NCBI GenBank assembly: GCA_047495785.1
Contig: JBLDXI010000009.1
Coordinates: 744,001-808,000 of the forward strand
Source: Lepidodermella squamata
Lineage: Eukaryota > Animalia > Gastrotricha
Length of the DNA: 64,000 nt
Direction: 5' to 3'
Part shown: one piece after another, positions 29,066 to 61,159 of the stretch
How the letters are laid out: each line of letters begins with the position of its first letter
Numbering within the stretch: the first letter of the stretch is position 1
The notes under the pieces: model-generated
Database searches by the model: none
The model's input: only the letters and a program-made list of their open reading frames with translations
Told to the model about the DNA's origin: nothing
Made by a program: the position numbers and the translations under genes

Positions 29066-29174
29066 CATGCTTGATAGAATTCATTTGTGTCAAATATCTC
29101 ACGTTTTTAGGCAATTTTCACCCTTTCTGTTTATTGCATAAAACTTGTTACATAAGTTTCTGTGCCGACTTACC

Positions 29175-33485: not shown

Positions 33486-36400
33486 TTATTGTGCACTGGA
33501 TTCAGATTTCTTTGATTTTTTCACAGAGCCAACTGGTTTCGAAGACGACTCTGCTTGGTTTTCTAGCGATCTTTTTTGACCAGAAGGACCATTTTCAACT
33601 TTTTGAGCTGGGTTTACGCGTTCATCATTCACAGTTTTCTTCTGATTCGGTTTCTTGAGCACTTTCAAGGCGGCGTTGCAAGCTGCTCGCACATCAGCCA
33701 TTTTCTTCCCGAGTGATTTGTCGCGAATTAATTCGATGTGGACAGCCAAATGAGCAAATGTGTCTATTTTCACGCTTCTTTCATCTTTGCTGGCACCAGT
33801 TACTGACGCGTAGACATGTCTCTTCACCAAATCGACAACATTTCGGTACAGCCAAGGCTGGGGTGTCGATTTGCTGAAAACGGTTTTTTAGTAACAAATA
33901 TGAGTATATTGAGTAATAAATCACCTTATGTCTTTGCTGTCCTCTTCATCCTCATCCGATGGACCAGCTCCCTTCAACTCCTCGGCAAACGATTGTAAAA
34001 GGTCCCCTAGAACTTCACCAAGCTTCGCGCCAATTTTCGGCTGCGCTTTGTAAGCGGTCGGAGTGATAAGTAGCGAAGAGCCCAGCAGCCGAGCAGCTTG
34101 TGAACGAGGGAAAGTTTTCGCTTTGTTTTGAGCTTTGTTGTCTCCTTCGTCTTGTTTCACATCTGATTTGGCGTCTTTCCCGACCAAACATTGCAACAAA
34201 CGGTCGAAGAAGATACCTTCCATTCGTGACAACGGGATGCGGGTCGATGACAGTAGATGCGAGAAGAAAACGTGGCCGTGAGGAGTAGGATGGGCCAAGT
34301 GATTATCAAGGGCAGTCTGAATAAAACAATAAGATAAGTCATAATAAAGAGTATCAATCAGCATTAAATGCATAGGCCTTGAATGTACTAGCAAATCTGG
34401 GTACATTTCCGGGAAATCAGGTTTTTTGATTTTCATATTTTGAACTCAGCTTAATAGTCTTCATACTATAAAATCTTCATACCTTAAGCGATGCAGCAAT
34501 TGTCTTTGATAAGACGACGGACGATTCATTCGATGATGAGCATAGTAGGAGTAGTTCGACAGTGAGCGCTGCAGTCTCTAGCTTGAGTTGGCTAGATGAT
34601 GGACTTTTAACCATTCGGGTTGCCGCGTCCAAAATCATTTCGCAGTGTCCAGAAAGGGCCGCAGCGACCGAATCGAGAATGCCCGCTTCGATAGCTTTTG
34701 TCTGACGCCAAGGAGCTAAAGCTTTCCTGACCAGCTCGCAGAAGCGGGCCTCAATCGAAAAACTGCAAGTTCTCTTTTTGCTGGCCAGTGTATTCAGCAA
34801 CACGGCAACAATTTCCACCAACAGTTTCTTACCGTCAACAGCTTCGCCGTCAGCCATATCATGTGCCTTTTGGACCAGCATGTCGAGCCAGCTGACCAGT
34901 TTCATGTGAAATTCCTGCATCTGCAGTTGCTGCATCTTCTTCTCGCGTTTCGCCCGCTTGGCAGGGCTGCCACCCGCAGTTGCAGATTTGAAAGCTGCAG
35001 CCAGGACGCTGTCAATCTTGAACATGTCCTCATCGTTCATTACGACAGAATCAGCGGAAGACGCCTTGTCATCGTCATCATCTTCATCCTTCAACACAGC
35101 AGGCGCTGTCGAAGACACAATGTGACCAGAAGAGGTCCGCTTGCGCTTAATTTTCGGCTTTTTCGCAGATTTATCTTCATCAACTTTCTCATTCGATTCA
35201 TCAGCCTCACTTTCGCTGCTGTTGCTATCGTCATCTTCACTCTCATCACTTCCATCGACTTCTTCATCATCTCCGCCATCTTGAGCATCCTCAACGAACT
35301 GAGTATTCAGTAAAGCGTTGACTATCAGATCAACAAGAGAAGAAGCCTGCGCTTCGCTGTCAGCATTTGTGGACGTGGTCAGCAGGGACAGGAGTCGTTG
35401 ATTTGAAATCAACTTTGCAAACATGCTGGTCGTGAGGTTTCGAACAGGGCGAGACTTCCTACTCAACAAGCCGATCAGCATGTCAACAAAAACACGAGCC
35501 GGCTCTTCTTCAGCACTCTCATCAGCCTGGCTCTTGGCGACCGATGAAAACAGCTCGCTTATCTCATTAGCCAACTGAACGATTTCCGAGTCTTTGGGGT
35601 TACAAACAAGCAGAAAAGCAACATGACAGCCGAACAACTTTAGTAACTCAAGTACAGTCCCATGCTGAGCTTTCTTCTTCGAAATCTTTACTAGCGAAGC
35701 AAATGCTTCCTTTGCATCACCAATTAGGGGTTCGATCATCAGGCAATCTTTGCCAAGCTCATCGTCTTCGGCAATACGACTCTTAAGAGAACTCAGGGTC
35801 GATTTCAATAGCACGATACATTCCGATGGGTCAGCCAAGTGTTTGGCAGAACCCGAAGTTGCAGAGCTAACTGCACGCATGACAATATTGACAGCTTGTT
35901 CACGGGGAAACAGGCCGATTTTCTGACCCTTTGGAAGGCTCATTTCAGGATTTTCGGTATTCGCTGTTTCATTCTCCGCAGTCAATTGCTTATCAACAAA
36001 GAGGCAAGAATCGGCAATCGTAGTCAATGTCGAAACAACCTCATCACTACTAATCGCCGGTGAGCAAAGGGCCAGCGTGCCAGCCAAATGCATAATGCTC
36101 CAACGTCTGGCTGCCAGCGCTGATGTGTTGTCTTCCCAACGATGGCTTTCTATCTCGTTGTCATCTTCGCTTTTGTCGTAGTTGTAGTTAAACTGGAAAG
36201 AGCTAGTCAGAGAAATAGAGCGGAAGATTTCAGACATGGAAGCAGCGGCTGATGGGGGCATTGCGTGCAGCAGCTTTTCAAACTGAGTCGGAAATTCATT
36301 CCAAGTTCGGGTCGGCGGACGTAAGAAGCACGCCAGAACGTGTACGAAGTATTCATCGCCAGCAGTTTCGACGTCAGACTGCGTTTTCTTCGAGCTGAAA

Positions 36401-37661
36401 CTGGCAATCAACTCTTCGAAAAACATCAAAATAGCTCCATGTTCATGGCTATGTTGGCGGCGCAATCCTTGAGATAACATCTCAATCATTTGACTGGAAA
36501 GTACCAGCGGAACCAAACTAGGTGCGGCCCGAAGAAGCCTGGTTAAGGCAACCAGAGACAGCTGAAGGGCGGCAGTTTTGTGTGTGAGTGGGGCACTCGG
36601 TAGTAGGAATCGCTCGTTCACAAGTTCCGACCAAAACTTGAAGAATCGTTTCATCATTTTCTTCTTCTGAATTTGCGACTCCATCATTTCGAGAATTTTA
36701 ACGGCGGCCAAGTGAACGAATGGCGTTTGCCGAGCCGAGACAATAACTGCAGCAACTTTGCTTGGATCCGAAAGAAGAGCGCTAACGAAAGACTGACGAT
36801 GCTGAGCAGACTCGGCAGGAAGCCAAGAACTTTCAACCCAAAAAGACGCCGGGGCGACAGGTTCGACTGCTAAGGCAAGCAATAACAAATCAGCGGCGTC
36901 TACGTCTGATGTTGAAGTCGGCCAGCCCGTCTTCAAAAGAGGTTTCACAACGGAAAATATCGCAGACTTGAAAGAACTAGCTGCGTCTGTATGGCTTAGC
37001 AAAGCATTGATAAGCTGACCCAAGATCGAACAAGCCATCTGAAAGGCAAATATGACACTGTAGGAAAAAGTGACAATAATTTTGATTCGAATTTACCTGT
37101 CGAAGTATGGGCTTAGATTTGAAAGCATCTACACATAGTGCAGCTAGCTTTGTAACGTCACTAGGACTAAGCGCGGAAATGTCATCGGTATTTATGCCTT
37201 TGGCAACCGATGCGACGAAGAACAACTGGCCTATGATTGTTTGCGTTTTGTCACCTTTGGCCATCTGACTGTTGGTCTTAAGAAATTGGCCACCAGAGAC
37301 CGGGTCGGAGAGTGACGCCATGGTTGACGACACAGAGACCATTTTCTGTGATAAACAATTAGCCAGGGCTGCAGCAAAGCCAACACGAGCCATTTTTCGG
37401 TTAGATGCAAGGCCGCGCACTAGTCGCTTGACTGCGTAGTTCGCATCATTCTGATCTGACGGATTATTCTTTTCCTTGAGATTGCAAGAATCATGAGAAA
37501 ATTCCAAGATGTTTATTTGAATCTACCTTGTTATTTTTAAAATGGGCCTCCAATTTTTCAGTTGCTGAGACACGCTGCTTTTGAGCGACTGCAGCGAGGT
37601 CTTCGAATATATTCATTGGAATCGACGATACCTCTCTCTTAGAGGATCCGGAATCAGTCAT
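33486..37661 (-). CDS. MYBBP1A: Myb-binding protein 1A / Pol5-like nucleolar protein, multi-exon
   Basis: YAVKRLVRGLASNRKMARVGFAAAL, VDMLIGLLSRKS, acidic tract then MNDEDMFKIDSVLAAAF, basic C-terminus. Confidence 0.88.
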
Positions 37662-42731: not shown

Positions 42732-44715
42732 TTATTTTCCACGTCGAATGATTTTCGGAGTTTTTGCAGAAGCTAAAGGTTCGTTGACCTGACGCAGATT
42801 TTCACCAACCACAGGACGTTTCGCTGCCAAAGGGGAGCCAAATCTTTGAACTGCAGATTTAAAAGCTGACGTTCCTATTGCTGCTTTTCCGACAGGTGCC
42901 GCAATTGGGTCGATGCTGTCTCGATTTTTGCGCCGAAGTGGACGAACGCCGTCAGCTGTGTTCGGTCGCTTGGGTTCTTCATCAGCGGTTTTTCTCGCTG
43001 ATTCGCTGACCTTATCAAGCTCGTTTGCGCGAGCCGTAGAGAGCCGCCCGTTCGCTCTCATCGGCCGGGTCAAACCGCGACCTCGAGAAGCTGTAGTCAT
43101 AGGTAGGATATCGTTACGTGACTGAGGGGCATAGTTGTAAACGATTCCACGACCGTTGAAAGCCACCTGATTTACTTTATCACGCATACTTTGATCTCGG
43201 GCCTGAAAGAAATTCATATAATCACAATTGACAATAGTCTAATAAAGAGCCAATACCATCCATGGATGATCGACAACCTGATCAGCGGACAAGCGGCGCG
43301 TGGGATCTACGGTAAGTAGACCTTTTATCAAGTTTATTGCCTCTGATGACGTTGACGACCAGCGTTCCGAGGGAAATGAGTAAGATCCGTTCAAGATTTG
43401 TTCTTCCAATGTCATATCTGTTCGCTCGTTATAGAAAGGAGGGTACCCGGCCAACGATGCGAATAAAATTACACCCATAGACCAGAGATCGACCTTTTTC
43501 GAGTAAATGCCATTGCCCTTGGTTTTGACGATTTCCGGGGCCAAGTAAGTCGGAGTTCCGCAATAGGTTCGTAGGACCGTTCCAGGATCGACAATTTTGG
43601 ACAACCCAAAATCAGCCAATTTTGCAATAGGGTAGTCATCATCGGATGAGAGTAGAATGTTTTCTGGTTTCAGGTCGCGATGGGTAATGCCGTTGTAATG
43701 CAAATATTGCACAGCGAGAGAGATTTGATAAAATATAAACTTGGCGAACTGTTCCGTTAGCTTGCCATTGCTGACGATCTTATCGAATAGTTCACCACCA
43801 GAGGCATATTCCAGAACGAGGAATAAATCGCCGGATGGAGGTTCATCAAACACATCCAAAATCTTGATAATGCAGGGGTGAGAGAGCTCGCGCATCAGCT
43901 TTGCTTCCTGAAGTCAGAAAATATTATAAGACAAATAAAAATACATTTCAATAGCACTTTACTCGAATGGCTTGAGCGTAACTGGAATGTTTGTCGTCAT
44001 CGCCAATGGCTTTCTTGGCTTCGTTATTCCCAGCAGGTGCCTCACTGAAAAACTTTGATCGGTGAACAATTTTTATGGCAACGGGTGTGCCAGTCCGTCT
44101 AGAAAATGCAAGCTGAACCTCGCCACATGCACCTTGACCGAGCTGCTTTGAAAATCGATAAAGATTTCGAAGGTTAAGCGGAATAGATGGATCATCAAGA
44201 ATAGAAAGATCTGCAAACATCATCACTCGGTTTTTAGCCAATGAAAGAGCTATTTCGGAATTGTTTTCCAACGGAACAGGAACGCCCTTAGTTAGCCGCT
44301 GACCGTTCACAAAAGTGCCGTTAGATGAGCAATCTTCGATTTCGGCGGAGCCGCCAGCCCTGCGCCTAACGCGAAATTGAATTCGACTGTACGACAACCA
44401 CATACTGAGGCGGCTCTTCTCTGAATCCGGAGGACGAGGTAACACTATGGTGACCGGAGGCCCGTCGTTACGTCCGACAATGTATTCGTTCAAAGTAAGT
44501 TGGCTTTGAGGCATATCAGGCGAGAGGCCGAGAAACAAACCCCACGGCGGATTATGATTTGCATTCTGCAAAGAGTCACCTAGGCTGTTTGAAATCGGCT
44601 GCGTGTCAAACTCCGAGATAGCATTGGCCGATAACGTATCATTGGTATTAACGGCAGTTCCATTTGAGCCCGAGTTTAAATCATCAGCGCAGGAAAAAAA
44701 TATGTCTTCAGACAT
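42732..44715 (-). CDS. CHEK2: Checkpoint kinase 2 (FHA plus kinase), three exons
   Basis: FHA GR..SR..SSNGTFVNG; LGQGACGEV, GGELFD, HRDLKPENILL, TYCGTPTYLAPE, LAGYPPF. Confidence 0.92.
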
Positions 44716-45028: not shown

Positions 45029-47487
45029 TCAAGAATTTCCAGGCTGATGCTGCTGGTGTTGATTAGCCGCAGCCAATTGTTCCCTCAATTCAGTGATTTT
45101 ACGTTGTATAGCTGAAAGACTCGAATGCACACCACCTTCGGCACCAGATGCAGAAGGGGAAGGAGAAGATAATGCAGGAAAGCGGGAAGGCGAGGGGCTT
45201 GAGATGCCACTATTACCTATTGCAGCATTGATTGGAGTTGCTTGCCTCAATGGATCCATTGCGAATCCCGTCTTGGACAAACCCGCCAGTCTCGACTGAA
45301 GTTCACGTTTTTCACGTGAAAGCAGCTTCACAGCCGCTCTTAAAGCATCCATTTCACTGGGGCAAAGAACACCAGACGGCGTTCGAGGTAGCTGCTCCAC
45401 GCTAGCAGCAGTTGCATTCAGATTGCTCGAAAAGCATTCGCTCGACAGTATCGACTCGGATGGAGACACCGGCCGATCAGCAAAGCTGTTCATCGCGACT
45501 TGACACGAAAAATGGGACTGTTCACTTGGTACAATTTGCGAAACTTCAAACTCGCAATCGAGTTGAGAAGAGGCATCGCGAAGAGAAAAAACCGAATGGC
45601 AAGCGTCTGTTCCAGAATCTGCGGACGCAGATGATGCCTGAGTTTCGGCATGGTCCCTAAGTAATATAGGGTCGGAAGCCTGGTTAAAAACTTCGATAAT
45701 TGCTTGCGACTGAGCATCTGCAGTGCACACTGGTGTTAATTCCACATCCTGATTGAGCGTTTGACATGTTGCATCAGCAGCTTCTATTCCACTTATTTGC
45801 GTGTAGATGTCCTGCAAAACGACAAGACCGCCGGCGTCGGTTGTCGCGTCAAATTTGAGCGTTTCTTCAACGGTGACCGTTTGAGCTTCGGAATCCGCCG
45901 TCAGCACAATACATTCAGTTGCCTTCGCCAAGCTCTCCGTAGCCAACGTTTGAGCACATGCTTCTGAGGTAGATGCCATTAGATCGGTCTGCGAATCGAC
46001 ATCTTCCAATGCTACGCCTGCCGATTCCGTCTCTACGTCTGAAACCTCAACTACAAGCGTCTGTGTCATGCCGTCGGAAGTGTCAATATCCCGCTCAGAC
46101 ACAGAGTTGTCCTCGTACTGCGACGCGACATCCAAACCAACTAAAGCACTACATTGAGTGAAAGTGTCGCAAGTAGCCCTAACATTTTCGAAGCACTCGA
46201 TTTGCTTTGAGTTATTGACATCAGGCATCTCAACAACGACAGGCTGTAAATCGATACTTGAGAATTGCACGGAAATGGAAGTATTCGGAAGCACGAAGTC
46301 TTCAGTTTGAACATCAGCCGAAGAAGAACTAACATCGCCTTCGAGCGGCTTAGAAAGAGAAAATTTCTGAGCTACATCCGGATCGGTTTGAGACTGCTGA
46401 TCAGCACACGACACACGGGGCGATTTAAACATGTCAATGGGTATCGGCATGACCACTGCATTGGTGGCCGCTTGAAGTGCCTGCTGCAGCTGATTGCATG
46501 CATCCACCAGGCTGTCTCGTTCCGAAGTTAGTACCGCAATCTCCTGGTCTCGTTGCCGAAGCCGTCCGGTCATATCAGCCAATTCTCGCTGAAGCTGCAT
46601 GGTCATCATTGCCATGGCAGCTTGTTGCTGAGTTTGAACTTGATTATTTGGCGTTCCCCTCTGCTGAAGATCCGCAACCCTAGATCCTAGTTGACGTTTG
46701 AGATCCGATTCGGCCAACTGCGCAGTTTCTAGCTGTGCCTATAAAATTTAACTAGGTCAAAATCTTCACGTTCATTATTGCAGAGGCGCAAACCTTCAGC
46801 TCAATCACTTTTGATTTCAGCTGATTCAAGGCAGCATCTTTCAGCTCCATGCGGCGTTCATATTCGGCAAGTTTGAATTTTGAATCATTTGATCGGTTTT
46901 CGATTTCTCTCAGAGTTGTATTCAGCTGAGTAATAGCTACATCCTTTTCTTCCACTTTTTTCGTCAAATCTAATTATTAGTTACCATAAAGTTGTTTCCA
47001 AGATGAGAAAAGCTTAAATTACCTTGCACCAAGGCATGACATGTGCGATAAGCTGAAACTGCAGGCGCCCATTTGTCTATGGTCGATTTAAGATTTTCGT
47101 TTTCAGCCATCAACGTCTTAACCAACTGCGCTCGAGCGGCCATAGTTTTGGCAGCATCATTTTCGACATGTGAAGCATCATTGTGGTGCAGATTATGATT
47201 AGATGGTGGTTGATGATGACGTATGGCTGGTACAGAAACAGTGGATAATGCTCGGCCGTATTCGGATGGTGGGCCTCCAATGCTCGAAGTTGGCGTGCTA
47301 ATTGCAAAAAACGATATAATAGTGGACAAATAGCATCTCATTTGACGTACGTTCTACCAGAAAGGTCACCGCCAGCTTTCCGGCTTATCTTCTTTTTGAA
47401 CCGTTCCAATCTTTTTTGCAACTGCTCACGAGAGGGATCTTTGCTTTGCTCCGAGACTTGAGGGTTATGAGAGCTCTCTGCGTTCAT
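45029..47487 (-). CDS. Unknown coiled-coil protein with central array of QT/TQ/SQ motifs, multi-exon
   Basis: ORFs 47338-47520, 46970-47341, 46752-46967 and 45029-46717 joined by short introns; heptad-rich ends; repeated QSQTD, DVQTE, MTQTL, DSQTD, CAQTL, EAQTV, TCQTL. Confidence 0.7.
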
Positions 47488-49225: not shown

Positions 49226-49752
49226 TAAAGTCAGTCGCTTTATGTAGATCGAGCATCGAGATTTTGTTTAATGGCTGAAACTTGAACAGCTTTGACCTTT
49301 GACTTTTGACTTGAACCCAAGTCAGCACTTTAAAAAAATGCTGAAGCTGTGAAAGACCACTGATCAGAGTTTCCATCGTTGGGTTTCCCCAGCCCTGCCT
49401 GCTTGAAAGGTAGTTTAGCAGTTAACAGGTTCCTACAGTTCCAACAGCGCGCCCTGCCCTGCGAAGTGATGCGGTTCATTCAAATAATTACTCGCGCCCA
49501 ACGAATCAGGAGAATATGCGTGAAAACCAATTATAAAAATGTCAGATACATTTTTTTGATTACATTATTATTCAAAGATATTCATAAACACTGGTTTTAT
49601 TACTTATGAATTTATTTCTCAGTCCGCATGTTTTCATTTTCTCGAAACAGAAATCGGGACGATTTTTGGCCGTCTCAAAAGCCGGATGCTATGAAATGCG
49701 CCTCAAGCAAGGCTTTGGAGAGCAATTCTTGCGCTCTACGCTAGCTGCTTCC
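49226..49752 (+). repeat. Left copy of 527-bp direct duplication flanking the LTR element
   Basis: Matches 60118-60644 (offset 10892) with no differences seen; the same spurious 76-aa ORF occurs in both copies. Confidence 0.95.
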
Positions 49753-50082
49753 TGTGACCCGACAGCCGAGACAATTTCGGCGACGACATCCAATTACGCC
49801 TACATAATTAGCCGGAAGACATCAAGGTCCCAATGACGTCAATGGCAACAGTAGTTGGATGCGGCGAGGTCGAAACGGCGCCTACGATTGCAATTACCGA
49901 AGACACCCACGAGCAATTATCGACAGACAGTAGGCGTCACCCCTGGACATTCCACTGCCTATATAAGGACCTCATTTTGTGAAGATGATCATTGTGCGGT
50001 AGTCGTGCTTTTGGAGCATTAACAATAAAGTTGCACATTGTTATACTCCTGTCTTTTGGAATAACCCTGAACCCAGGTTACA
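49753..50082 (+). repeat. 5' LTR (330 bp)
   Basis: TGTGACC...GGTTACA; CRE palindrome TGACGTCA at 49834, TATATAA at 49960, Inr-like TCATT at 49989, AATAAA at 50024. Confidence 0.96.
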
Positions 50083-50086
50083 TAAC

Positions 50087-50099
50087 TGGTGGCAGCGGT
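50087..50099 (+). other. Primer-binding site, tRNA-Leu
   Basis: TGGTGGCAGCGGT is complementary to the 3' end (ACCGCTGCCACCA) of metazoan tRNA-Leu(AAG/TAG); lies 4 nt (TAAC) after the LTR. Confidence 0.85.
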
Positions 50100-50287
50100 T
50101 GGCTTTAGAGTTTATTTTTCACCCCGAACAGTTGCTACCCAACTCTTCTCCACGTGGAGGATTGCTTAATAAAGTTTTCTCTCAAGAAAACTGTAACATC
50201 TGTATAAACTAGCTACTAAGTTATTCGTCTTCTCTTTATTTCACCGATAAGCAACTCGTCTAATTAAGGAATAGATAAGCTAGCGCA

Positions 50288-53200
50288 TTGCCTAATACCA
50301 GGCATCAGCATTTAGAGCAGGATATCCCTGTGCTAAGTAAGGTACAAACCGAAGGTCACGGAATAAGGAAAAGGGCGAACACGGCTTCGAAAGTCGAACC
50401 GAAAAGTGAGCCCGTAGACACACAGGAAACTCAGGAAACCACTAAAGAAACACTAACAGTAGATAAAACTCTCAGCAACAACCCATCTCCTAACGCTGCT
50501 AAAGGATTCTTGATAGCAGCCAAGAATCTACTAGGAAGTCTACAAAGGCCTAGCACGACCAAGAAAACCAGCACAGTCGACGAAAAGGAGGAAGCAACGC
50601 AGATCTTCCCCATTGGATCAGGTGGAGCGCTCGTCGTTCATACACCCGTGAAAACTCGTCTACCGAAACCAAAGGAAATTACGTCCATGGCAGATTACAA
50701 GATCCCTACGTCCGTAACGTTCAAAAACATCGTGCCCTTCGATGTGTCGTCCATCCCAAAGTTCGAAGAGTCGTTCGCTAAATTTGAAGCAGCGGCTAGA
50801 GCGGCGGGAGCTAAGGAGCCAGTAGGGACGGATACGGGAAATGAGGGAGGCGACAAACGGTTTACATTCGGAGCAGCACGCACCATGGTTCGATGCTTGC
50901 TGCCGACCCATTTCCAGGACGACTGGCGCGACGAGGCACTAGATGATATCAAATCATACGGCAAGCTAAGGGAGAAAGTCATGGAGACGGTTGGACTAAA
51001 CGTCAACAAACAAGTCCATCGAGAGGCGTTCGTGAAGAGGCGCCAACTGGCTAACGAGAGCCCAAGAGCATATATGCGAGAGTTGAAAAGACTTGCCAAG
51101 TGGGCGGACATAACATCGGACAGTGGATACAGCAAGACGCTCGCAGATACGTTCAAAGCCGGACTCCGAAAGGAGTACCGGGCATACATATATGATCATC
51201 CACCAGAGAAGAAGACTCCGGAGAAAAAGGACGACCCGTTATGGCTCGTATCCCGATGCGACGAATACGACGAACGCCAGCAAGTGGTAGGCGAGGAAAC
51301 AATCGGTATCAACAGACTGTCGCTTAACGACAACGAGAAGACCTGCTACGGTTGCCAACAAAAGGGCCATATTAGGAAAATGTGCCCGAATCAGGCGCAG
51401 GGTCAAAGAAGTCAACAGCGAGCTGGGCCGACCGGGGCACCGCACATCTCTCAGAACGGCCGATGGCCCATCAACTTCTTACGAAACAGGAACAGCAGGC
51501 CGAAGAGTGATGGAACCGATGGATGTTTTAACTGCGGCAGACCAGGACACTTCGCTCGAGAATGTCGACAACCCAACAACCGCGGGGCTGTCAGGAATTT
51601 CAAGCCATTCGGATCGGGAGGCGGTCGCCCAAACAGACGGCAATACGTCCCGATTCGGATGTTGGCGCTGAATAGCCTAGGCGACCGGAGCATGGTTCTC
51701 GACGCACAGGCTAACGGGAAACCAGTACGCTTCATAGTGGACACCGGAGCGGCTGTTAGCGCCATCCGGGCCGACCTGGTAGATCCGCGCCGAGTAACGG
51801 GGAAGGAAATGGCCGCGGTGAACGCCGACGGCACGGAAGCCCCAATACGAGGCCAAACAGCGGTGACCCTAGAAGCGGGACCTTTTCGCGGAAAACAACC
51901 ATTTGTCGTAATGGAGGCCCTCAACGCCGAAGGTCTTCTCGGCTTTGACTTCATCAAAGACAACGACATTGTCGTGGATATTCCGAGGAACCGTCTACTC
52001 TGGAAGGATCATGTCATACCGTGTAAAGCTTCATTGGGGCCGGCAGCCTTACGGCTACCAATGAGAGCCGTGCGGATGGCACAAGAACAGATCATCCCAG
52101 CGGGAACTCGCACAACGGTGCTCTGCAGCGTACCAATGGCAAAAGAAGGAGAAACGGTACTCTTCAAACCGGAGGGTAAAGATGGCGATACAGAACCTTG
52201 CCTGGTCTACGGACACACCGTTGACACGGTCAAGGACGGAAAGATTCGGATAAACGTCTTCAACGTCGGGACGACTCCGGAAAGAGTTCGGCCAATGACG
52301 GCGATTGGCAGTGTCGAGCCAATAACGGACGACCAGATTAGCCCATACCGCACACAAGGCCGGGTCAAATGGGAGCCAAAGGTCGACCTGTCATCCAAAA
52401 TGCTTAACGACGAACAACGAAAGAAAGTCCGAGCGCTTATCAATGCATACTCCGACATATTCAGCAAAGACGATGACGAAGTCGGACATTGCCCTTTCAT
52501 CGAACATAAAATTCGTGTCACTGGCCCACCATTCCGACAGCCGTTACGACGGACAACGCATGAGGAACGAGAAATCATGCGCAAAGAAGTCGAGAAAATG
52601 GAACGGATGAAAGTCATCAGACCAAGCAACAGCAGCTGGGCAAGCGCGGTATGTCTGGTGAGGAAGAAAGATGGCAAGTATCGCTTCGCCATAGACTACC
52701 GCGTCCTAAACAAAAGGGTCCACGAAGCGGGATACTCCGATCCTTTTCCGCTACCCCGAATCGACGATACCCTAGAAGCACTCGGAGGGGCCACCATATT
52801 TTCAACGTTCGACCTTCAGTCAGGGTACTGGAATGTCCCAATGGAAGAGGAATCCAAACCGTATTCGGCATTCGTAACCCCATGGGGCCTATATGAGTGG
52901 AACGTAATGCCATTTGGACTGTCCAACGCACCGGCGACGTTTCAGAGGCTGATGCAATACGTGTTCCACGGAATGCTATTCGAAGAAGTATTGATTTACT
53001 TGGACGATATAATCACATTCTCGAAGACATTCGAAGAACATCTGGTCCGGCTAGAGCACACTTTCCAACGAATCCGACAGGCGGGGCTAAAAATGAAACC
53101 GTCGAAGTGCCACATCGCACAAGAAGAGGTCGAATTCCTCGGATATCTGGTATCCGGTAAGGGAGTGCGCCCGGACCCGAGGAAGACTGCACCAGTGCTA

Positions 53201-55333
53201 AACTACCCAATACCCAGAGACATCTCGCAAGTCCGATCGTTCATGGGAGTCTGCTCGTACTACCGACGATTTATCAAGAATTTTGCAAAGATTGCGGAAC
53301 CCCTAATCGCGCTAACAAGGAAGAGCGAAGAAAGGTTCGCATGGAACAAGGAAGCGCAAGAAGCGTTCGACACGCTTAAACAGCACTTGGTGTCACCACC
53401 CATATTGGGTTATCCTCAGTTCGAGAAACCGTTCAAAATCTACACGGATGCGTCGAATTGGGCGATCGGAGCAATCCTGTCTCAGGATCAGGCAGACCAA
53501 GATGGGAACATTCGGGAAGTAGTCATCGCATATGCGTCGCGACAGCTAACAAAGACGGAACGCAACTACTGCGCCACTGAACGCGAACTTCTTGGCGTTT
53601 ACTGGGCGGTTAAGACGTTCCGACCCTACATACGCGTCAACGACATCGTATACCTGTACACAGACCATAACCCGATCGTCCAACTCGACCAAGCTCGCGA
53701 CAGCACGGGAAAAATGGCCCGTTACAAGATGTTGTTGCAGGAGTACAACATCCAGTACATCTACAAGCCGGGAAAAATACACACAAACGCGGATGGACTG
53801 TCAAGGACCCCGGCAGACGAGACCGTCAAAATCAAACCGGCAATGTTTAGCTTGCAGCTAGCGACGGAACTGACGGTAGAAAATATCGGACGCGAGCAGA
53901 AGAAGGACGAAAACATACAGAAAATCTGCCGGGACTGCGAGGCGGGCAAAACAAACAGCTATCTGTGCGACGATCAATTGTTGAAGTTCAAATCCAAAAG
54001 GGAAAAAGGTCCCCAGGAATTGATCGTCCTGCCCGAAACACTTATCCAGGCTGCAATCAAGCAAGCACACCTGGAATTGGGACATCTGGGTGCTGACAAA
54101 ACCATTGAACACCTAAAGGAACGTTTCTTCTTCGGCGATATGGACGCCCGGACACGACGAGTCATCGAATGCTGCGTCCCCTGCCAGCGCAGGAAGGAGC
54201 CGCAAGCAGACGTCGTTCCCATGCAGCACATCGCCGAGGCCGAGTATCCCCTGCAGAAAGTATGCTGGGACGTAGCCAAGCTGACCACGTCGTCCAGCGG
54301 TAATAGTTGCGTACTGTTCATTGGAGACATCTTCACCAAGTACGTCAAGGGATACCCGATGAAGGATGAAAAGACAGCGACGATTGTTCGACATTTTCTT
54401 CACTTCATAAGCGAGCATGGATGCGTAGAATCCATCCACAACGACCAAGGAAGGAACTTCGAAAGCAAGACGATAACTGAACTGTGCAAAGCAATCGGCA
54501 TAGATCGCACAAGGTCGACAGCCTATCACCCGCAAGGCAATGGATTTATCGAGAGATTTAATCGCACAGTGAAAGCTATGCTCGCGAAAGTTATCGATGA
54601 GAGACAACGCGACTGGGACGTACAGCTGCCATGGAAGCTCCAAGCTTATAATGCGGCAAAGCAAGACTCGACGGGCTACACACCGTATTTCCTGTTCCAC
54701 GGAAGACCGTTCAGATTCCCAGCCGACGTCCTTCTGGACAACGCACCGAAATTCCAAAGCACCGACGAGTACGCAAAGGAGATACACAACAGACTCCGAC
54801 TAGCGTACGAAGAAGCGAGACAGAACGCAGAGGCAGCTCGCGCAAAGCAGAAGGCACAACATGACAAAGGGCGGAAGGAGCGAGAAGGATTCACAGTCGG
54901 CGAGCTGGTCCTGCTCCATGAGCCGCTACGTCAGTTGCATCTGTCAAGAAAACTTCACTGCCCGTATACGGGCTTGTACACCGTGGTAGCCAAAACGGGC
55001 CCGGTGACATACGCGATTCGACTCCTCGACGGGCGAGCGCCTAGTCGGATCGTGAATCTAGCAAGGTTGAAACCATTCAACGCAGACGAAATAGACACGA
55101 TCAGAGAGGCAGCGGGTCGTGAGACCGAAGACAATGAGGAGCGAGGAGGACTCGGAATCGAAGACACGAACGGAGAAGTCATTACAGCACCCGAGGTCGA
55201 AGAGGCAACGATCGACGAGTTGCGACAACAGTGCCCCGACGCCGGGATCGCTATGGGACCGGAAGAGGACAACGAAGAGCGACCGAAGCGAGCCAGGAAG
55301 CAAACCGACTTCTTCCAGGCGGGGGCTAGGTAA
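50288..55333 (+). CDS. gag-pol: Gag-Pol polyprotein, single ORF (first ATG at 50687)
   Basis: Two CCHC knuckles, protease FIVDTGA, RT YRFAIDYR/MPFGL/YLDD, RNase H YTDAS..ERE..YTDH, integrase HHCC plus D(CWDV)-D(HNDQG)-E(IERFN), GPY/F-like CPYTGLY; no chromodomain. Confidence 0.96.
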   Translation: MPNTRHQHLEQDIPVLSKVQTEGHGIRKRANTASKVEPKSEPVDTQETQETTKETLTVDKTLSNNPSPNAAKGFLIAAKNLLGSLQRPSTTKKTSTVDEKEEATQIFPIGSGGALVVHTPVKTRLPKPKEITSMADYKIPTSVTFKNIVPFDVSSIPKFEESFAKFEAAARAAGAKEPVGTDTGNEGGDKRFTFGAARTMVRCLLPTHFQDDWRDEALDDIKSYGKLREKVMETVGLNVNKQVHREAFVKRRQLANESPRAYMRELKRLAKWADITSDSGYSKTLADTFKAGLRKEYRAYIYDHPPEKKTPEKKDDPLWLVSRCDEYDERQQVVGEETIGINRLSLNDNEKTCYGCQQKGHIRKMCPNQAQGQRSQQRAGPTGAPHISQNGRWPINFLRNRNSRPKSDGTDGCFNCGRPGHFARECRQPNNRGAVRNFKPFGSGGGRPNRRQYVPIRMLALNSLGDRSMVLDAQANGKPVRFIVDTGAAVSAIRADLVDPRRVTGKEMAAVNADGTEAPIRGQTAVTLEAGPFRGKQPFVVMEALNAEGLLGFDFIKDNDIVVDIPRNRLLWKDHVIPCKASLGPAALRLPMRAVRMAQEQIIPAGTRTTVLCSVPMAKEGETVLFKPEGKDGDTEPCLVYGHTVDTVKDGKIRINVFNVGTTPERVRPMTAIGSVEPITDDQISPYRTQGRVKWEPKVDLSSKMLNDEQRKKVRALINAYSDIFSKDDDEVGHCPFIEHKIRVTGPPFRQPLRRTTHEEREIMRKEVEKMERMKVIRPSNSSWASAVCLVRKKDGKYRFAIDYRVLNKRVHEAGYSDPFPLPRIDDTLEALGGATIFSTFDLQSGYWNVPMEEESKPYSAFVTPWGLYEWNVMPFGLSNAPATFQRLMQYVFHGMLFEEVLIYLDDIITFSKTFEEHLVRLEHTFQRIRQAGLKMKPSKCHIAQEEVEFLGYLVSGKGVRPDPRKTAPVLNYPIPRDISQVRSFMGVCSYYRRFIKNFAKIAEPLIALTRKSEERFAWNKEAQEAFDTLKQHLVSPPILGYPQFEKPFKIYTDASNWAIGAILSQDQADQDGNIREVVIAYASRQLTKTERNYCATERELLGVYWAVKTFRPYIRVNDIVYLYTDHNPIVQLDQARDSTGKMARYKMLLQEYNIQYIYKPGKIHTNADGLSRTPADETVKIKPAMFSLQLATELTVENIGREQKKDENIQKICRDCEAGKTNSYLCDDQLLKFKSKREKGPQELIVLPETLIQAAIKQAHLELGHLGADKTIEHLKERFFFGDMDARTRRVIECCVPCQRRKEPQADVVPMQHIAEAEYPLQKVCWDVAKLTTSSSGNSCVLFIGDIFTKYVKGYPMKDEKTATIVRHFLHFISEHGCVESIHNDQGRNFESKTITELCKAIGIDRTRSTAYHPQGNGFIERFNRTVKAMLAKVIDERQRDWDVQLPWKLQAYNAAKQDSTGYTPYFLFHGRPFRFPADVLLDNAPKFQSTDEYAKEIHNRLRLAYEEARQNAEAARAKQKAQHDKGRKEREGFTVGELVLLHEPLRQLHLSRKLHCPYTGLYTVVAKTGPVTYAIRLLDGRAPSRIVNLARLKPFNADEIDTIREAAGRETEDNEERGGLGIEDTNGEVITAPEVEEATIDELRQQCPDAGIAMGPEEDNEERPKRARKQTDFFQAGAR

Positions 55334-55385
55334 ACTTTCAGATGTTCACCTAAATAAATGTTGTTCTTTGTTTTCTAGAAGAAAT

Positions 55386-58112
55386 ATGTTGAATATTGTA
55401 GTATTGTTAGGATTATTCGTAGGAATACCGCCGAGCGAGACACAGCAATTGCCTCCTATACTGTTCCCTAAGGCTTTGGTGAGAGGGGTCCACAAGGGCT
55501 CGATGCACGAAAGCAAACATATGATGCTGTTCAGCGGTATGGAACAGATCCACTTCAAAGAAATGTGGGCAGAAACAGAAGCCCACATTAAACCCTTCGC
55601 GGAGTACTTCTTGGAAACGGAACATTTATTAATGCCGGGACCCCTGGACAGGATAAAACGATGTTCATCATTCAAAAAGACGGCGACGTGCACCAACTTG
55701 GTGGGAATGTCGGAGAAGGAGTGCCTCACAAAGCAAGAACAATCGCCGGGAGCCTGTCCACAACCGAGCGAAAAAGGGGGCAACTCGCGGCGCAAAAGAG
55801 AGACAAACGACACAGAAATTACGAAAAAACCAACGATTCCCAGCACGCGGGCGAAGAAAACACCGGCAATAATGACGACGCCAACGGCGAAAACGACAAC
55901 GAGAACACCGCTGAGAGAGCTGACAACCAAAGCAACCGTTACAAAACCGACAACACCAAAACCAACGTCCGCAACAACTAAAAGCGTTTCGAAAACAACA
56001 CCCGAGGTGATCACAACAACGAAGGGACAACCGGAGAACTCAACGACGACAAATTCTGTACCGAACGGGACGACGCAAACCGTCTCGGGCGACGCTCCGA
56101 TTGCGGGCAGAAAAGGAATACCGGAAAGACCCTACAAGAGCAACGCGATGGAGCAGTCCGCGGCGCGCGAGGAACTCAAAACCGACGCGGGAGTCACAGC
56201 GCGAGAAACCGGACAAGGCTCGAAAGACCGGGGAAGAAAACGATCAATCTCATGGCTTTGCTCTAACTACTTCACGAAGCTGATCTACGTGGCGCTAGGA
56301 AACGCCTGTGACGAGGGTGTCGGCGAGGCAACAATAAGTACGGTCAAGGAAGCAAGTAGCATCATGAAGGAGGAAGCAAGCGGACTTCAGATCAATGGAA
56401 GAACAAGCCTGATGTTAGGCGAAGAAATACATGACGTCGTCAGGACACTGGAAAGCAAGACGGAAGCAATGACGAACATTACCAACAAGCTGTACGAAGA
56501 CGACGCCAATCTGCAGAAATTTGCCGCGGCGCAAACACGCGTCAACTCTCACATCTACCACGAGCTACTAAAGATGGCAAGGATGCAGAAGCTAGCGAAG
56601 ATAATGACGCTAGAAGGCACGAGACCTCTGCGCGTATCGGATCTGACGGAAGCGCTAAGAAAGGCAATAGAACGGCAAATCAGAGCGAAGGGAAACGACT
56701 TCGGCGATTTGGACGACGCGATTTTCGAAAGAAACTTACCCTTACTGATGAATCCACGAATTAATTTCCAAGCGAGCGAGCTGGCCTTGGAAGCACAATT
56801 GTTAGTGGATGTACCGGTTCTGGGGGCGTTACAATGTGAAGTGTACGAGCTGGAACCTTTAGCATTAAAGGTGGGAGATACATGCATTTCGGCAACAAGA
56901 CAACACTTTCAGGACGTTATCGCGATCAAATGCGACACGGCGACAAGACTGGTTAACAAGATAGCACTGGAGGAGTGCGATATTGTCCCGAATTGGGGAT
57001 GGCTATGCCCGACAGGAATCAGCTACGCGGGAACTATGCCAGAATGGGCACAAGAGGACGGCGGGGCGAACACCCCGATGTTGATCGAAACACCGGACAC
57101 GGAAAGACAGAATGGGACGATATGCGACAGCATGCCACCGGCGGTGGAAGTCGGAGACCGACGTTATCTGCTTACGAAGGAAATGAACTATACGTTCGCG
57201 GTCGCACGGTTCGCGCCGTATGCGATAGAAGCGAGAGACAACAAGATGTTTCGTGGGAAGCCAGGACAGATCATTCAGTTATCCTGTCAAGAAAAACTGA
57301 TGGAGTGGGTCGCAATAGCAGTAGCCAAGCGAGGCGGATGGTGGCAAGTCCGCGGGAATCGCCAATCGCGCAAGTGCGCGAACCAGGAACTCGGAAAACA
57401 CGGATTCATAAGGATTTTTGACAACGAGACAGTGGATGTCCTCGATTTGGATCATTCAGCATTGGACAAATTCGCGGCCGATCAAGAAGAGGACATAAAA
57501 GAATTGAGACAGAAATGGCAAGATAAATCATGGCTGCAAAAGATTGCGAAGAGGGACGAGGTCATCAAGAAACTGGGCGTGGAAGCAGTGGCGAGTGGTC
57601 ATGCTGTGGACCAGCACCTGAGCAAAATGCAAGGATATATCGCGGAAATGAAAACGGAAGAACACTTGGATTTCTGGGAAAAATGGGTAATGCGCGTCGG
57701 ACTCGCGGTTACATTCGCGATCGCGATTCTCGATCTCTTCATCGCACTGGGACTCGCATATGGCATTAAAATGGCGAGCAGCAGCCGAATTCCAATAAGA
57801 CACATGGAGGTAAAAGACAAGTCGAAGACCGAAACATGTTTGGGGCCGGAGGGAGCGGAAGCATCCGCCCCATTGATGGAGGAACAGCCACCCTTGTACA
57901 ACAACGAACCTGGTACGGTCGACTACCGAAAAAAGGCGAGGAATCCATTTGCCGAACTGAACGAACGAGAGCTGGAAGTTTATCGACGCTTGCAGAACCG
58001 TTTGCCGGAAACATCAGCCGGTGAGCTAACAGGATGGGTGCTAAACATCGCACGCACCGACGGAATTTGGAAGAACGATACAGCGATGAGGACGATGATT
58101 TGCACGGCTTAA
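55386..58112 (+). CDS. env: Envelope glycoprotein, class I / F-type, about 908 aa
   Basis: Signal peptide MLNIVVLLGLFVG, furin sites RRKR and RGRKR, hydrophobic post-cleavage peptide, heptad region, Cys-rich ectodomain with N-glycosylation sequons, TM VGLAVTFAIAILDLFIALGLAYGI, 114-aa tail. Confidence 0.88.
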   Translation: MLNIVVLLGLFVGIPPSETQQLPPILFPKALVRGVHKGSMHESKHMMLFSGMEQIHFKEMWAETEAHIKPFAEYFLETEHLLMPGPLDRIKRCSSFKKTATCTNLVGMSEKECLTKQEQSPGACPQPSEKGGNSRRKRETNDTEITKKPTIPSTRAKKTPAIMTTPTAKTTTRTPLRELTTKATVTKPTTPKPTSATTKSVSKTTPEVITTTKGQPENSTTTNSVPNGTTQTVSGDAPIAGRKGIPERPYKSNAMEQSAAREELKTDAGVTARETGQGSKDRGRKRSISWLCSNYFTKLIYVALGNACDEGVGEATISTVKEASSIMKEEASGLQINGRTSLMLGEEIHDVVRTLESKTEAMTNITNKLYEDDANLQKFAAAQTRVNSHIYHELLKMARMQKLAKIMTLEGTRPLRVSDLTEALRKAIERQIRAKGNDFGDLDDAIFERNLPLLMNPRINFQASELALEAQLLVDVPVLGALQCEVYELEPLALKVGDTCISATRQHFQDVIAIKCDTATRLVNKIALEECDIVPNWGWLCPTGISYAGTMPEWAQEDGGANTPMLIETPDTERQNGTICDSMPPAVEVGDRRYLLTKEMNYTFAVARFAPYAIEARDNKMFRGKPGQIIQLSCQEKLMEWVAIAVAKRGGWWQVRGNRQSRKCANQELGKHGFIRIFDNETVDVLDLDHSALDKFAADQEEDIKELRQKWQDKSWLQKIAKRDEVIKKLGVEAVASGHAVDQHLSKMQGYIAEMKTEEHLDFWEKWVMRVGLAVTFAIAILDLFIALGLAYGIKMASSSRIPIRHMEVKDKSKTETCLGPEGAEASAPLMEEQPPLYNNEPGTVDYRKKARNPFAELNERELEVYRRLQNRLPETSAGELTGWVLNIARTDGIWKNDTAMRTMICTA

Positions 58113-58346
58113 GGCAAGAAAGACTCCGACTTCTAACAAACATTAGTTAAGCATCGCTATAGTCGATCGATCTACAATAGATTTCTGAGAAAAGTAGACG
58201 AATTCGAAGGCTAGTTAAGGAGAAAAGCTACCAAAATTTTTCAAAAAAATTTATCTGCGAAAAATTATCTGCCGAAAATTTTCTAAGTCCAAAGAAAAAA
58301 TCGATATCACGCTAGTACATTCTATAGTAACATATGAATACCATAG

Positions 58347-58550
58347 GCGTAGTATTGTTATGTTTGTGCGCAGTATTGTTATGTGTGTGAGAAGCGCGCA
58401 AGTATTATCATGTGTGTGTGAGGCGCGCAAGTATTATTATGTGTGCGAGAGCGCAGTACTATTATGTGTGCGAAAGCGCGCAGTATTCGTATATGTGGAA
58501 GGCGCGCAGTATTATAATGTGTGTACGAATGCGCAGTATTGTAATGTGTG
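58347..58550 (+). repeat. Degenerate tandem array (about 8 units of 21-29 bp, core GCGCAGTATT-N-TATGTGTG)
   Basis: Units read directly, e.g. gcgcagtattgttatgtgtg, gcgcaagtattattatgtgtg, gcgcagtattataatgtgtg. Confidence 0.85.
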
Positions 58551-58837
58551 GGCAACACATAGAAATACTATAGAGGCACCGTTATTCACAGTAATGTGCG
58601 TAGAAAATCGATAAGTCATGTACTTGGGAAATTGTTACAAAATTACACAAAAGGCCGCCTACCTCCAACGCGCGGTTATGACGCAAAAGCGTCGAAGCCC
58701 TAGATTGGCGGAGCCCTAGAGCGGTAATTACACCGCTAATTAGATCGGGGGCGGCCGCGCTGCGGGGAAGGGAAGGCCGAAAAATTGTCAGTGTTGCACA
58801 TTTAATTTTCGTTTGAATTTGCTTGTGAACCGAAAAT

Positions 58838-59695
58838 ATGCCACGGCTGCAAGGAAATCAGGCACACCTCTCGTACGATACGGATGCCAACGTCGCGTCG
58901 CCGGCAGGATTTCGACGGTGCGTCGCCGATATACTCACCGACGTATGGTGCAATGTCGGGCGGCCGGAGGACATCCCGTTTGTCGCAAGAGATGCCGCCG
59001 ACCGCGCCATACGAAGAATGATGTTATTCTCGATCAATCGCGGCGTCCGTACGATGTTCGACCTGGGAGACGACGTGTGGGTCAATACGGAGCACCCATT
59101 TTGGGAGGCAAACCGTTTAACAACTGATTTGGCCAACCCGTCGTTCCTGATCGAGAAATATCTGGACCAACTGACCAGAAACGGGGAGGCGAGAGATCAT
59201 CATCGACTGGCCTTTCAGTGGATGGTCAGGAGGGAGGAACGGGCCTTGTTAGGCGATGGCGACAGCGAACCAGAGCCGGGCCCGAGTCAGGACGCCGCGC
59301 CGACCGAACCGCGCACGGAGGCGCCCGCAAACGCGATAGCGGACGTCTCTGCTCCGCAAGGAGACGTCTTAACACTCGACGAGCGGCAGGATGACGGGGT
59401 GATTGAGGTCGCTGAGGAGCCAGACGACGGAGTGATCGAGATCACCGAGCAATTCCATGCCGCGGAAGAAAGAAGAAAGAGGAGCGGCCGAAACAAGAAC
59501 AGGCCGATAATCGTCGAAGACGAGGCGGAGCGCGGGGCAGCCGATCATCCGATCGAGATCTCGGACGATGATGCACCGAAGGAAGAGCCGCAGGAATGCT
59601 GGCCGAGCGGGCGACCGCGGCGGAGAGGTGTCCCGTATCCGAACTACGTGGTGGAGCCCAAGAAGCTGCGTGGTATATTTTCGGGGACCCGTTAA
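58838..59695 (+). CDS. Accessory ORF3 of the retroelement, 285 aa, unknown function (multi-SIM-like, NLS-like)
   Basis: Intact ATG-started ORF inside the element between env and PPT; predicted folded N-half, acidic C-half with VLTL, VIEV, VIEI, IIVE and IEIS motifs; RRKR and RPRRR. Confidence 0.75.
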   Translation: MPRLQGNQAHLSYDTDANVASPAGFRRCVADILTDVWCNVGRPEDIPFVARDAADRAIRRMMLFSINRGVRTMFDLGDDVWVNTEHPFWEANRLTTDLANPSFLIEKYLDQLTRNGEARDHHRLAFQWMVRREERALLGDGDSEPEPGPSQDAAPTEPRTEAPANAIADVSAPQGDVLTLDERQDDGVIEVAEEPDDGVIEITEQFHAAEERRKRSGRNKNRPIIVEDEAERGAADHPIEISDDDAPKEEPQECWPSGRPRRRGVPYPNYVVEPKKLRGIFSGTR

Positions 59696-59755
59696 CGTGA
59701 CGAATTTTTTATATTAATGTTGTTGTTAAAACTATTTGAGGACAAATAGGACAGT

Positions 59756-59764
59756 GGAGGGGGA
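59756..59764 (+). other. Polypurine tract
   Basis: GGAGGGGGA immediately before GTTA and the TG of the 3' LTR. Confidence 0.85.
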
Positions 59765-59768
59765 GTTA

Positions 59769-60098
59769 TGTGACCCGACAGCCGAGACAATTTCGGCGAC
59801 GACATCCAATTACGCCTACATAATTAGCCGGAAGACATCAAGGTCCCAATGACGTCAATGGCAACAGTAGTTGGATGCGGCGAGGTCGAAACGGCGCCTA
59901 CGATTGCAATTACCGAAGACACCCACGAGCAATTATCGACAGACAGTAGGCGTCACCCCTGGACATTCCACTGCCTATATAAGGACCTCATTTTGTGAAG
60001 ATGATCATTGTGCGGTAGTCGTGCTTTTGGAGCATTAACAATAAAGTTGCACATTGTTATACTCCTGTCTTTTGGAATAACCCTGAACCCAGGTTACA
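59769..60098 (+). repeat. 3' LTR (330 bp)
   Basis: No differences from the 5' LTR seen on reading. Confidence 0.96.
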
Positions 60099-60117
60099 TA
60101 ACGTCAGTCGCTTTATG

Positions 60118-60644
60118 TAAAGTCAGTCGCTTTATGTAGATCGAGCATCGAGATTTTGTTTAATGGCTGAAACTTGAACAGCTTTGACCTTTGACTTTTG
60201 ACTTGAACCCAAGTCAGCACTTTAAAAAAATGCTGAAGCTGTGAAAGACCACTGATCAGAGTTTCCATCGTTGGGTTTCCCCAGCCCTGCCTGCTTGAAA
60301 GGTAGTTTAGCAGTTAACAGGTTCCTACAGTTCCAACAGCGCGCCCTGCCCTGCGAAGTGATGCGGTTCATTCAAATAATTACTCGCGCCCAACGAATCA
60401 GGAGAATATGCGTGAAAACCAATTATAAAAATGTCAGATACATTTTTTTGATTACATTATTATTCAAAGATATTCATAAACACTGGTTTTATTACTTATG
60501 AATTTATTTCTCAGTCCGCATGTTTTCATTTTCTCGAAACAGAAATCGGGACGATTTTTGGCCGTCTCAAAAGCCGGATGCTATGAAATGCGCCTCAAGC
60601 AAGGCTTTGGAGAGCAATTCTTGCGCTCTACGCTAGCTGCTTCC
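60118..60644 (+). repeat. Right copy of 527-bp flanking duplication
   Basis: Matches 49226-49752; continues into the pre-insertion sequence (ttcc|taagcag). Confidence 0.95.
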
Positions 60645-61159
60645 TAAGCAGTTGCGCACCACTTGCTTGCGAAGCACTCGCTACGCTCAAAGCAGCTCAG
60701 TCAACATGCTTCCCAAGCAATGCGCCCGGCGCACTGCCGTGGTCGGTCGGTCGGCATGGCGAGGCGACGTTCTAGATAAAAGGATGTTTGTAATTATAGG
60801 ACCTAAAATGGCTACCCTCTGAGATGTGAACTCCGAGAAGGCATTTCTACTCACGAAATTGGAAGACGAATAAAGGCAAGACGGTAAGAATACGCAAACA
60901 TCATTTGGTCCTACATTGAGCTTGCTCTAATTCTTAGCCTCTAGAATTGTAAAATGTACACGATTTTAATGCTTCTCAGCGCGACCATTTCGGAACAGCT
61001 CAAAAGTTGGGAATGTTGTCAGTGCTTATTGAGCCATATTTCGCTTGGGAAGCAGTTGCTTTAGAAGCAGTGCATGGGAAGCAGCTGGCTTATAGCGCAT
61101 TGCTTGCGAAGCAGTTGCAGAAGCAGGCGCATTTCATAGCGTCTGGAATCTGAAACGGC
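60561..61159. mobile_element. Decayed foldback/MITE-like element, about 600 bp, with long imperfect inverted arms
   Basis: gccgtctcaaaagccggatgctatgaaatgcgcct (60561) matches the reverse complement of the right end, gccgtttcagattccagacgctatgaaatgcgcct; further inverted blocks agctgcttcc and gcttcccaagc. Confidence 0.6.

Follow-up and report, generated by a model that had tools for sequence, protein, structure and literature searches.

The window analysed was a stretch of 64,000 nucleotides from the gastrotrich Lepidodermella squamata. Host genes are packed compactly over positions 1-47000 of the window, and their coding stretches are long and uninterrupted. Pfam domains marked an NCBP3-like gene (1775-2497), a TBC gene (15032-15799), a MORC/zf-CW gene (24367-25785), a T-box gene (29145-30317) and, on the minus strand, a MYBBP1A-like gene (34477-37038) and an FHA plus kinase gene (43239-44715). 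An ORF of 562 aa on the minus strand (45029-46717) yielded no domain. An Rfam scan of the window returned no matches, and a tRNA scan found no tRNA genes in the 64 kb.

One LTR retroelement was found in the window, at 49753-60102, and all of its features given here lie on the plus strand. By its LTRs and the order of its pol domains it is a Ty3/gypsy (Metaviridae-type) LTR retroelement. The 5' LTR (49753-50086) and the 3' LTR (59769-60102) each comprise 334 nt and are 100% identical. A TATA-like box (49960-49967) and an AATAAA (50024-50029) were read from the sequence of the 5' LTR. This LTR is adjoined by a stretch beginning with TGG (50087-50104), the position and first bases of which fit a primer-binding site. 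A purine-rich tract (PPT), also read from the sequence, abuts the 3' LTR at 59740-59765.

The gag-pol gene is a single unbroken ORF running from its first ATG at 50687 to the stop at 55333, in a frame that is open from 50288. Pfam matches to a CCHC zinc knuckle, protease, reverse transcriptase, RNase H and integrase, all above the cut-offs, follow the Ty3/gypsy order. With pol as the query, 2557 relatives were recovered in a word-based protein search. The closest relative of gag-pol (P0001) shared 70% identity in pol, 59% overall and about 45-50% in gag, and those following it shared at most 50% identity in pol. P0001 came from a Logan assembly contig of 9568 nt, a length sufficient for downstream ORFs.

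ORF2 (55386-58112, frame open from 55119) encodes 908 aa when started at the methionine that opens a hydrophobic leader. The protein has a hydrophobic N-terminus, 8 N-x-S/T sites, 16 cysteines, basic cleavage-like sites, a stretch rich in Thr, Pro and Ser (52 of 100 residues) and a single membrane span (aa 767-797) followed by a short tail. Read from its sequence, ORF2 is envelope-like, with an architecture that fits a type I membrane glycoprotein. Searches against Pfam, the PDB and the word-based protein collection gave no family match, including to F-type or gB-type proteins. ORF2 is thus an orphan despite its clear type I glycoprotein architecture.

All three ORFs of the element (gag-pol, ORF2 and ORF3, the last described below) were free of stops, frameshifts, insertions and deletions, which together with the identical LTRs suggests a recent insertion. 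No second copy of the element was found in the window. The insertion site is unusual. Copies of a 528-nt host stretch, 100% identical to each other, stand on either side of the element (49226-49752 and 60118-60645). The second copy is separated from the 3' LTR by 15 nt (60103-60117) in which the opening bases of the flank recur. The element ends show no ordinary short target-site duplication. A 7-nt terminal inverted repeat is completed by four bases that stand in front of the 3' LTR but not of the 5' LTR. The duplicated flank could reflect an aberrant integration that duplicated a large target, an insertion that fell between two tandem copies of host sequence, or an assembly artefact. With this abnormal flank structure, the copy may be atypical of its family.

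The stop of ORF2 (58112) is separated from the start of ORF3 by a 725-nt spacer, which showed no coding signature in any frame (scores under the codon model described below were negative). The spacer contains a tandem array of about seven copies of a 25-29-nt unit (58347-58550; TRF score 180) and, 60-150 nt upstream of the ORF3 ATG, a GC-rich patch (58690-58775). The patch was read from the sequence as a candidate internal promoter or acceptor region. Together the array and the patch could form an enhancer or internal promoter, in the position where some complex retroviruses have one.

ORF3 occupies 58838-59695, from an ATG at 58838 to a TAA at 59693-59695, and encodes 285 aa. An in-frame stop lies three codons upstream of the ATG, and an A is present at -3. 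About 45 nt separate the end of the frame from the PPT and about 70 nt separate it from the 3' LTR. The preliminary description had reported a third intact ORF of 285 aa between env and the PPT, and this was borne out. Its comparison with a complex-retrovirus layout is also a fair description of an element with gag-pol, an envelope-like ORF and a third gene.

No relative of ORF3 was recovered. The whole protein gave no match in Pfam or the PDB, in a word-based protein search of 5.8 billion clusters, or in an exhaustive HMMER scan of 1.84 billion protein representatives. The HMMER scan was run without a length limit, so that its coverage extended to kin of greater or lesser length and to fusions. 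With E values up to 10 allowed in Pfam, no RING, E3 or other domain appeared beyond a noise-level match to a nucleoprotein, and at the same limit the separately searched C-terminal half gave nothing in either Pfam or the PDB. The N-terminal region of about 140 aa had been called unrecognised, and that noise-level nucleoprotein match was its sole result in the two libraries. Described retroviral and retroelement accessory families (Tas/Bel, Tax, Rev and CERV) gave no named match in Pfam, the PDB or the two protein searches. The possibility that ORF3 was copied from gag-pol or ORF2 of the same element, or from any of 120 pol relatives, was rejected, with matches of at most 8 bits. The exact sequences of ORF3, ORF2 and gag-pol were all absent from a collection of 15 billion proteins. 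The blank result for ORF3 is weak evidence, because ORF2 was blank too and the element family is barely represented.

The coding status of ORF3 was assessed against the alternative that it is non-functional. Under that account it would be a young lineage-specific open frame, perhaps a remnant, kept open by luck and by a T-poor strand, and its motifs would arise incidentally from low-complexity sequence that is acidic and rich in Val and Ile. The absence of a relative from every library and of the exact sequence from the 15-billion-protein collection would suit such a frame, as would the single copy in the window and the want of a confident fold. ORF2 was equally orphan in the word-based search, so that the blank reflects database coverage more than any property of ORF3. 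The 288-codon stop-free run arose in only 2 of 10,000 Markov-1 simulations of the region (P = 2e-4) and is therefore improbable even at the region's own composition.

A codon model was trained on gag-pol and scored in bits per codon, in frame and in shifted frames. In frame, ORF3 scored +0.27; with the frame shifted, it scored -0.23 to -0.35. Strand composition is controlled in this comparison, because frames of the same sequence are compared. The frame-specific signal equals that of ORF2 (+0.23 bits per codon), which argues against a frame open by luck. A score limited to synonymous codons gave +0.17 for ORF3, +0.24 +/- 0.05 for blocks of the element and -0.27 +/- 0.07 for host ORF pieces. 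Third-position T was 0.13 in ORF3 compared with 0.31 in host ORF pieces. Third-position A was lower in ORF3 than in gag-pol and ORF2, which counts in favour of a non-functional frame. The element-like synonymous usage counts against noncoding sequence and against recent capture from the host, and the latter origin is disfavoured on this ground.

Residues 185-195 and 196-206 of ORF3 form an old 11-codon duplication. The 7-codon core of the unit has accumulated three silent changes and one Val/Ile change, and the four flanking codons have accumulated three amino-acid changes. The duplicated motif has diverged at silent sites with its residues kept, which is the pattern expected under protein-level constraint, in a small sample. 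A non-functional frame is on this evidence an unlikely account. We consider it likely that ORF3 is a real gene of the element, and it is probably a genuine orphan accessory gene.

The C-terminal half of ORF3 contains an acidic region (aa 176-245; 59363-59572) with a cluster of motifs resembling the SUMO-interacting motif (SIM). The core of a SIM comprises four residues, at least three of them hydrophobic and mainly Val, Leu or Ile, and acidic or phosphorylatable flanks aid binding, CK2 being a common kinase (PMC12751080). A strict motif was accordingly defined after that source as a four-residue core with at least three Val, Leu or Ile and an acidic or phosphorylatable flank. Four motifs fitted, starting at aa 177, 188, 199 and 224 (within 48 residues). 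A weaker fifth one at aa 238-245 has two hydrophobic core residues beside a Ser-Asp-Asp-Asp flank with a CK2-type serine, and failed the strict definition.

The motifs quoted in the preliminary description (DVLTLDE, DDGVIEVAEE, DDGVIEITE, PIIVEDE and PIEISDDD) and both quoted basic stretches are all present in ORF3. Its count of five SIM-type motifs holds for four of them under the strict definition, the last having only two core hydrophobics. The even spacing claimed for them applies to the first three, which lie at an 11-residue pitch, and not to the whole series, with gaps of 11, 11, 25 and 15. Motifs 2 and 3 are not independent, because both derive from the one 11-residue duplication.

The cluster was compared with chance and with other retroelements. 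Composition-preserving shuffles of the C-terminal half gave an expected 0.39 strict motifs against the four observed (P = 1e-4), and P = 7e-4 was obtained after one copy of the duplicated unit had been removed. Strict motifs were found at a density of 1.4 per 100 aa in ORF3 and of 0.40 in 120 retroelement polyproteins, a difference of about 3.5 times. Four motifs within 60 residues occurred in one of these 120 polyproteins.

Two basic patches accompany the acidic region. Patch 1 (aa 212-222; 59471-59503) is NLS-like and lies between motifs 3 and 4. Patch 2 proper (aa 259-263) is also NLS-like in appearance and was annotated with the aromatic/proline stretch that follows it (aa 259-270; 59612-59647). 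Both NLS-like stretches noted previously were found, and a nuclear role for them is putative. No signal peptide or membrane span was found in ORF3. One loose SUMOylation-type match was present (Pro-Lys-Glu-Glu at aa 247).

The N-terminal domain (aa 1-140; 58838-59257) was predicted to be mostly helical by AlphaFold2 in single-sequence mode, at low confidence. The pLDDT was 44 for the full-length protein and 41.5 for aa 1-150. Both models placed helices at about aa 20-137 and coil in the tail, where pLDDT was below 50 without an alignment. At such low pLDDT, matches from fold searches with these models would be meaningless. Disorder of the tail and accessibility of its motifs are weakly supported, since both models are poor. 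In the preferred reading ORF3 encodes a soluble protein of two parts, a helical N-terminal domain and an acidic tail predicted to be disordered.

From these features ORF3 is plausible as a multivalent SUMO binder. That it is a nuclear protein with a tail that would bind SUMO multivalently is regarded tentatively as a serious possibility, one that falls somewhat short of being probable. The 16 hydrophobic residues of aa 170-250 comprise 13 Val or Ile, 2 Leu and 1 Phe, the last being the sole aromatic residue. A Val/Ile-rich, aromatic-poor composition is more in keeping with SIMs, which form a strand, than with acidic activation domains. The coil predicted for the tail and the lack of a signal peptide or membrane span also accord with the SUMO reading. 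A short and degenerate motif such as the SIM is easily matched by an acidic disordered region with many Val and Ile residues, which counts against SUMO binding. The shared duplication behind two of the four strict motifs and the failure of the fifth at the strict core count against it likewise.

The same layout of helical N-terminal domain, basic patches and acidic tail would also suit a nuclear regulator that acts independently of SUMO. This could be an activator of the LTR or of an internal promoter, comparable to foamy-virus Tas or deltaretrovirus Tax, or an RNA-export or RNA-handling factor, comparable to Rev or to CERV of Cer1. The acidic tail would then serve as an activation or partner module and the arginine-rich patch as an RNA- or DNA-binding site. 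Complex retroviruses keep their regulators downstream of the envelope gene, and ORF3 is placed in the same way behind an envelope-like gene, with the repeat array and GC-rich patch directly upstream. One Ty3/gypsy element of an invertebrate depends on a novel nuclear protein to export its genomic RNA (PMC10309623). Several features of ORF3 speak against such a regulator. The whole Pfam library yielded no retroviral regulator family for it, NES-type patterns are confined to the predicted helical domain, and the N-terminal domain is not basic (net charge -3). Activation domains favour aromatic and leucine residues, and the tail of ORF3 is almost devoid of both. A SUMO-independent regulator is given a low probability.

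Derivation of the N-terminal domain from a captured nucleoprotein fragment of a negative-strand RNA virus is extremely improbable: the match of aa 15-111 (58880-59170) to positions 154-240 of Paramyxo_ncap (PF00973; E = 0.084) reached 12.2 bits against a curated cut-off of 27, covers less than a quarter of the nucleoprotein core, and is not independent of the PDB match, which covers the same positions of a solved morbillivirus nucleoprotein (E = 0.13). The matched region is predicted to be helical, an LTR lineage of rotifers acquired its envelope gene from paramyxoviruses (PMC5408684), and capture of this kind is the presumed origin of the envelope genes of such elements. Against this, the exhaustive protein scan was empty, and some 20 proteins in total had been put through the scans. 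The match was treated as noise because the same search gave ORF2, used as a control, an equally strong spurious match (a glutathione synthetase domain, E = 0.06).

For the preferred reading of ORF3 as a multivalent SUMO binder, the following course of events is proposed. The protein would be made from a subgenomic RNA that is either spliced or started in the repeat-bearing spacer, and the basic patches would carry it into the nucleus. There the closely spaced SIM-type motifs would bind several SUMO units at once, with CK2 phosphorylation strengthening the last motif, and the N-terminal domain would provide a second contact through self-association or a partner. Thus equipped, the protein would dock on SUMO-rich chromatin platforms. 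Any effect must come from binding alone, because ORF3 has no catalytic or RING module, and it is not a SUMO-targeted ubiquitin ligase, since it is without a RING domain.

The outcome judged most likely on such a platform is that ORF3 would compete with effectors that bear SIMs and are drawn in by SUMO to silence transposons. Su(var)2-10, a SUMO ligase of flies, couples Panx to effectors of this type (PMC8490990), and a multi-SIM protein could compete at this junction. The main alternative in which the tail still binds SUMO is that the replication products of the element would be tethered to SUMO-rich chromatin. An anti-silencing role of ORF3 is speculative. Its most specific form is a nuclear multivalent SIM decoy that would occupy the SUMO platform of small-RNA-guided or SetDB1-type silencing and exclude SIM-bearing effectors. 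We rate this form as decidedly improbable.

The consequences differ with the reading. Should ORF3 prove to be confined to one copy or lineage and unexpressed, it would be a curiosity of one insertion. If its tail does read SUMO, the gene would point to the host transposon-silencing pathway and would provide a natural protein for asking whether mobile elements counter silencing there. A literature search for mobile elements that fight back against silencing returned plant examples only. If the decoy reading were true, ORF3 would become the first case of an animal retroelement that encodes an antagonist of SUMO-dependent transposon silencing.

Among plant cases, VANC of the Arabidopsis VANDAL transposons (PMC5735166, PMC10398659) offers a precedent for a transposon-encoded anti-silencing factor. 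VANC, the product of a DNA transposon, binds DNA sequence-specifically and brings about a loss of DNA methylation; it is unconnected with SUMO and bears on the idea only. Closer in motif layout are RNF4 and herpesvirus ICP0 (PMC12751080), which share with ORF3 several SIM-type motifs set close together and flanked by acidic or phosphorylatable residues, in a stretch that in ORF3 is tentatively predicted to be disordered. The four adjacent SIMs of RNF4 are the published model of poly-SUMO preference, and viruses use SIMs against SUMO-dependent defences (PMC12751080). Unlike RNF4 and ICP0, ORF3 has no RING or catalytic module; no homology to them was found, and its SUMO binding is predicted.

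The preliminary description recognised no such ORF in described Ty3/gypsy elements. This requires qualification, since envelope-carrying elements (PMC13524379), extra ORFs (PMC5408684) and a nuclear accessory protein (PMC10309623) are all known. It stands in that none of these has been reported with SIMs and none emerged as a relative of ORF3. The envelope-carrying Ty3/gypsy elements ('errantiviruses') have been described across metazoans (Chary and Hayashi, eLife 2026, PMC13524379). The present element resembles them in its LTRs, a gag with a zinc knuckle, a pol in the order protease, reverse transcriptase, RNase H and integrase, a downstream ORF of envelope architecture, and the combination of unbroken ORFs with identical LTRs. 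It differs in ORF3, as that survey names gag, pol and env only, and a search of its text gave nothing specific on third or accessory ORFs. ORF2 had no match in Pfam, the PDB or the protein search that would place it in the F-like or gB-like classes of the survey.

In bdelloid rotifers, LTR elements have likewise picked up varied third ORFs downstream of pol (PMC5408684). Those ORFs are envelope-like or encode recognisable enzymes (GDSL esterase, DEDDy exonuclease) that replace env, whereas ORF3 is additional to an envelope-like gene and is without a recognisable domain. Cer1, a Ty3/gypsy element of C. elegans, resembles the present element in encoding a novel lineage-restricted nuclear protein, CERV, beyond gag and pol (PMC10309623), the nuclear location of ORF3 being predicted. 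CERV is produced from a subgenomic spliced RNA, is regulated by phosphorylation and is needed for export of genomic RNA (PMC10309623). It has exons in common with gag and with the 3' end of the polyprotein frame, unlike ORF3, which is free-standing after the envelope-like gene; no similarity between the two was recovered, and SUMO has no occurrence in the CERV paper (PMC10309623).

ORF3 stands apart as a free-standing orphan ORF that is additional to env, carries a SIM-type cluster and has no homology found to any of the systems compared. Envelope-carrying Ty3/gypsy elements are now regarded as ancient and widespread in animals, and no more than three genes have been described in them. With a fourth coding unit standing free behind env, the element attains the layout of a complex retrovirus, and ORF3 would extend the very short list of regulatory proteins from invertebrate LTR elements.
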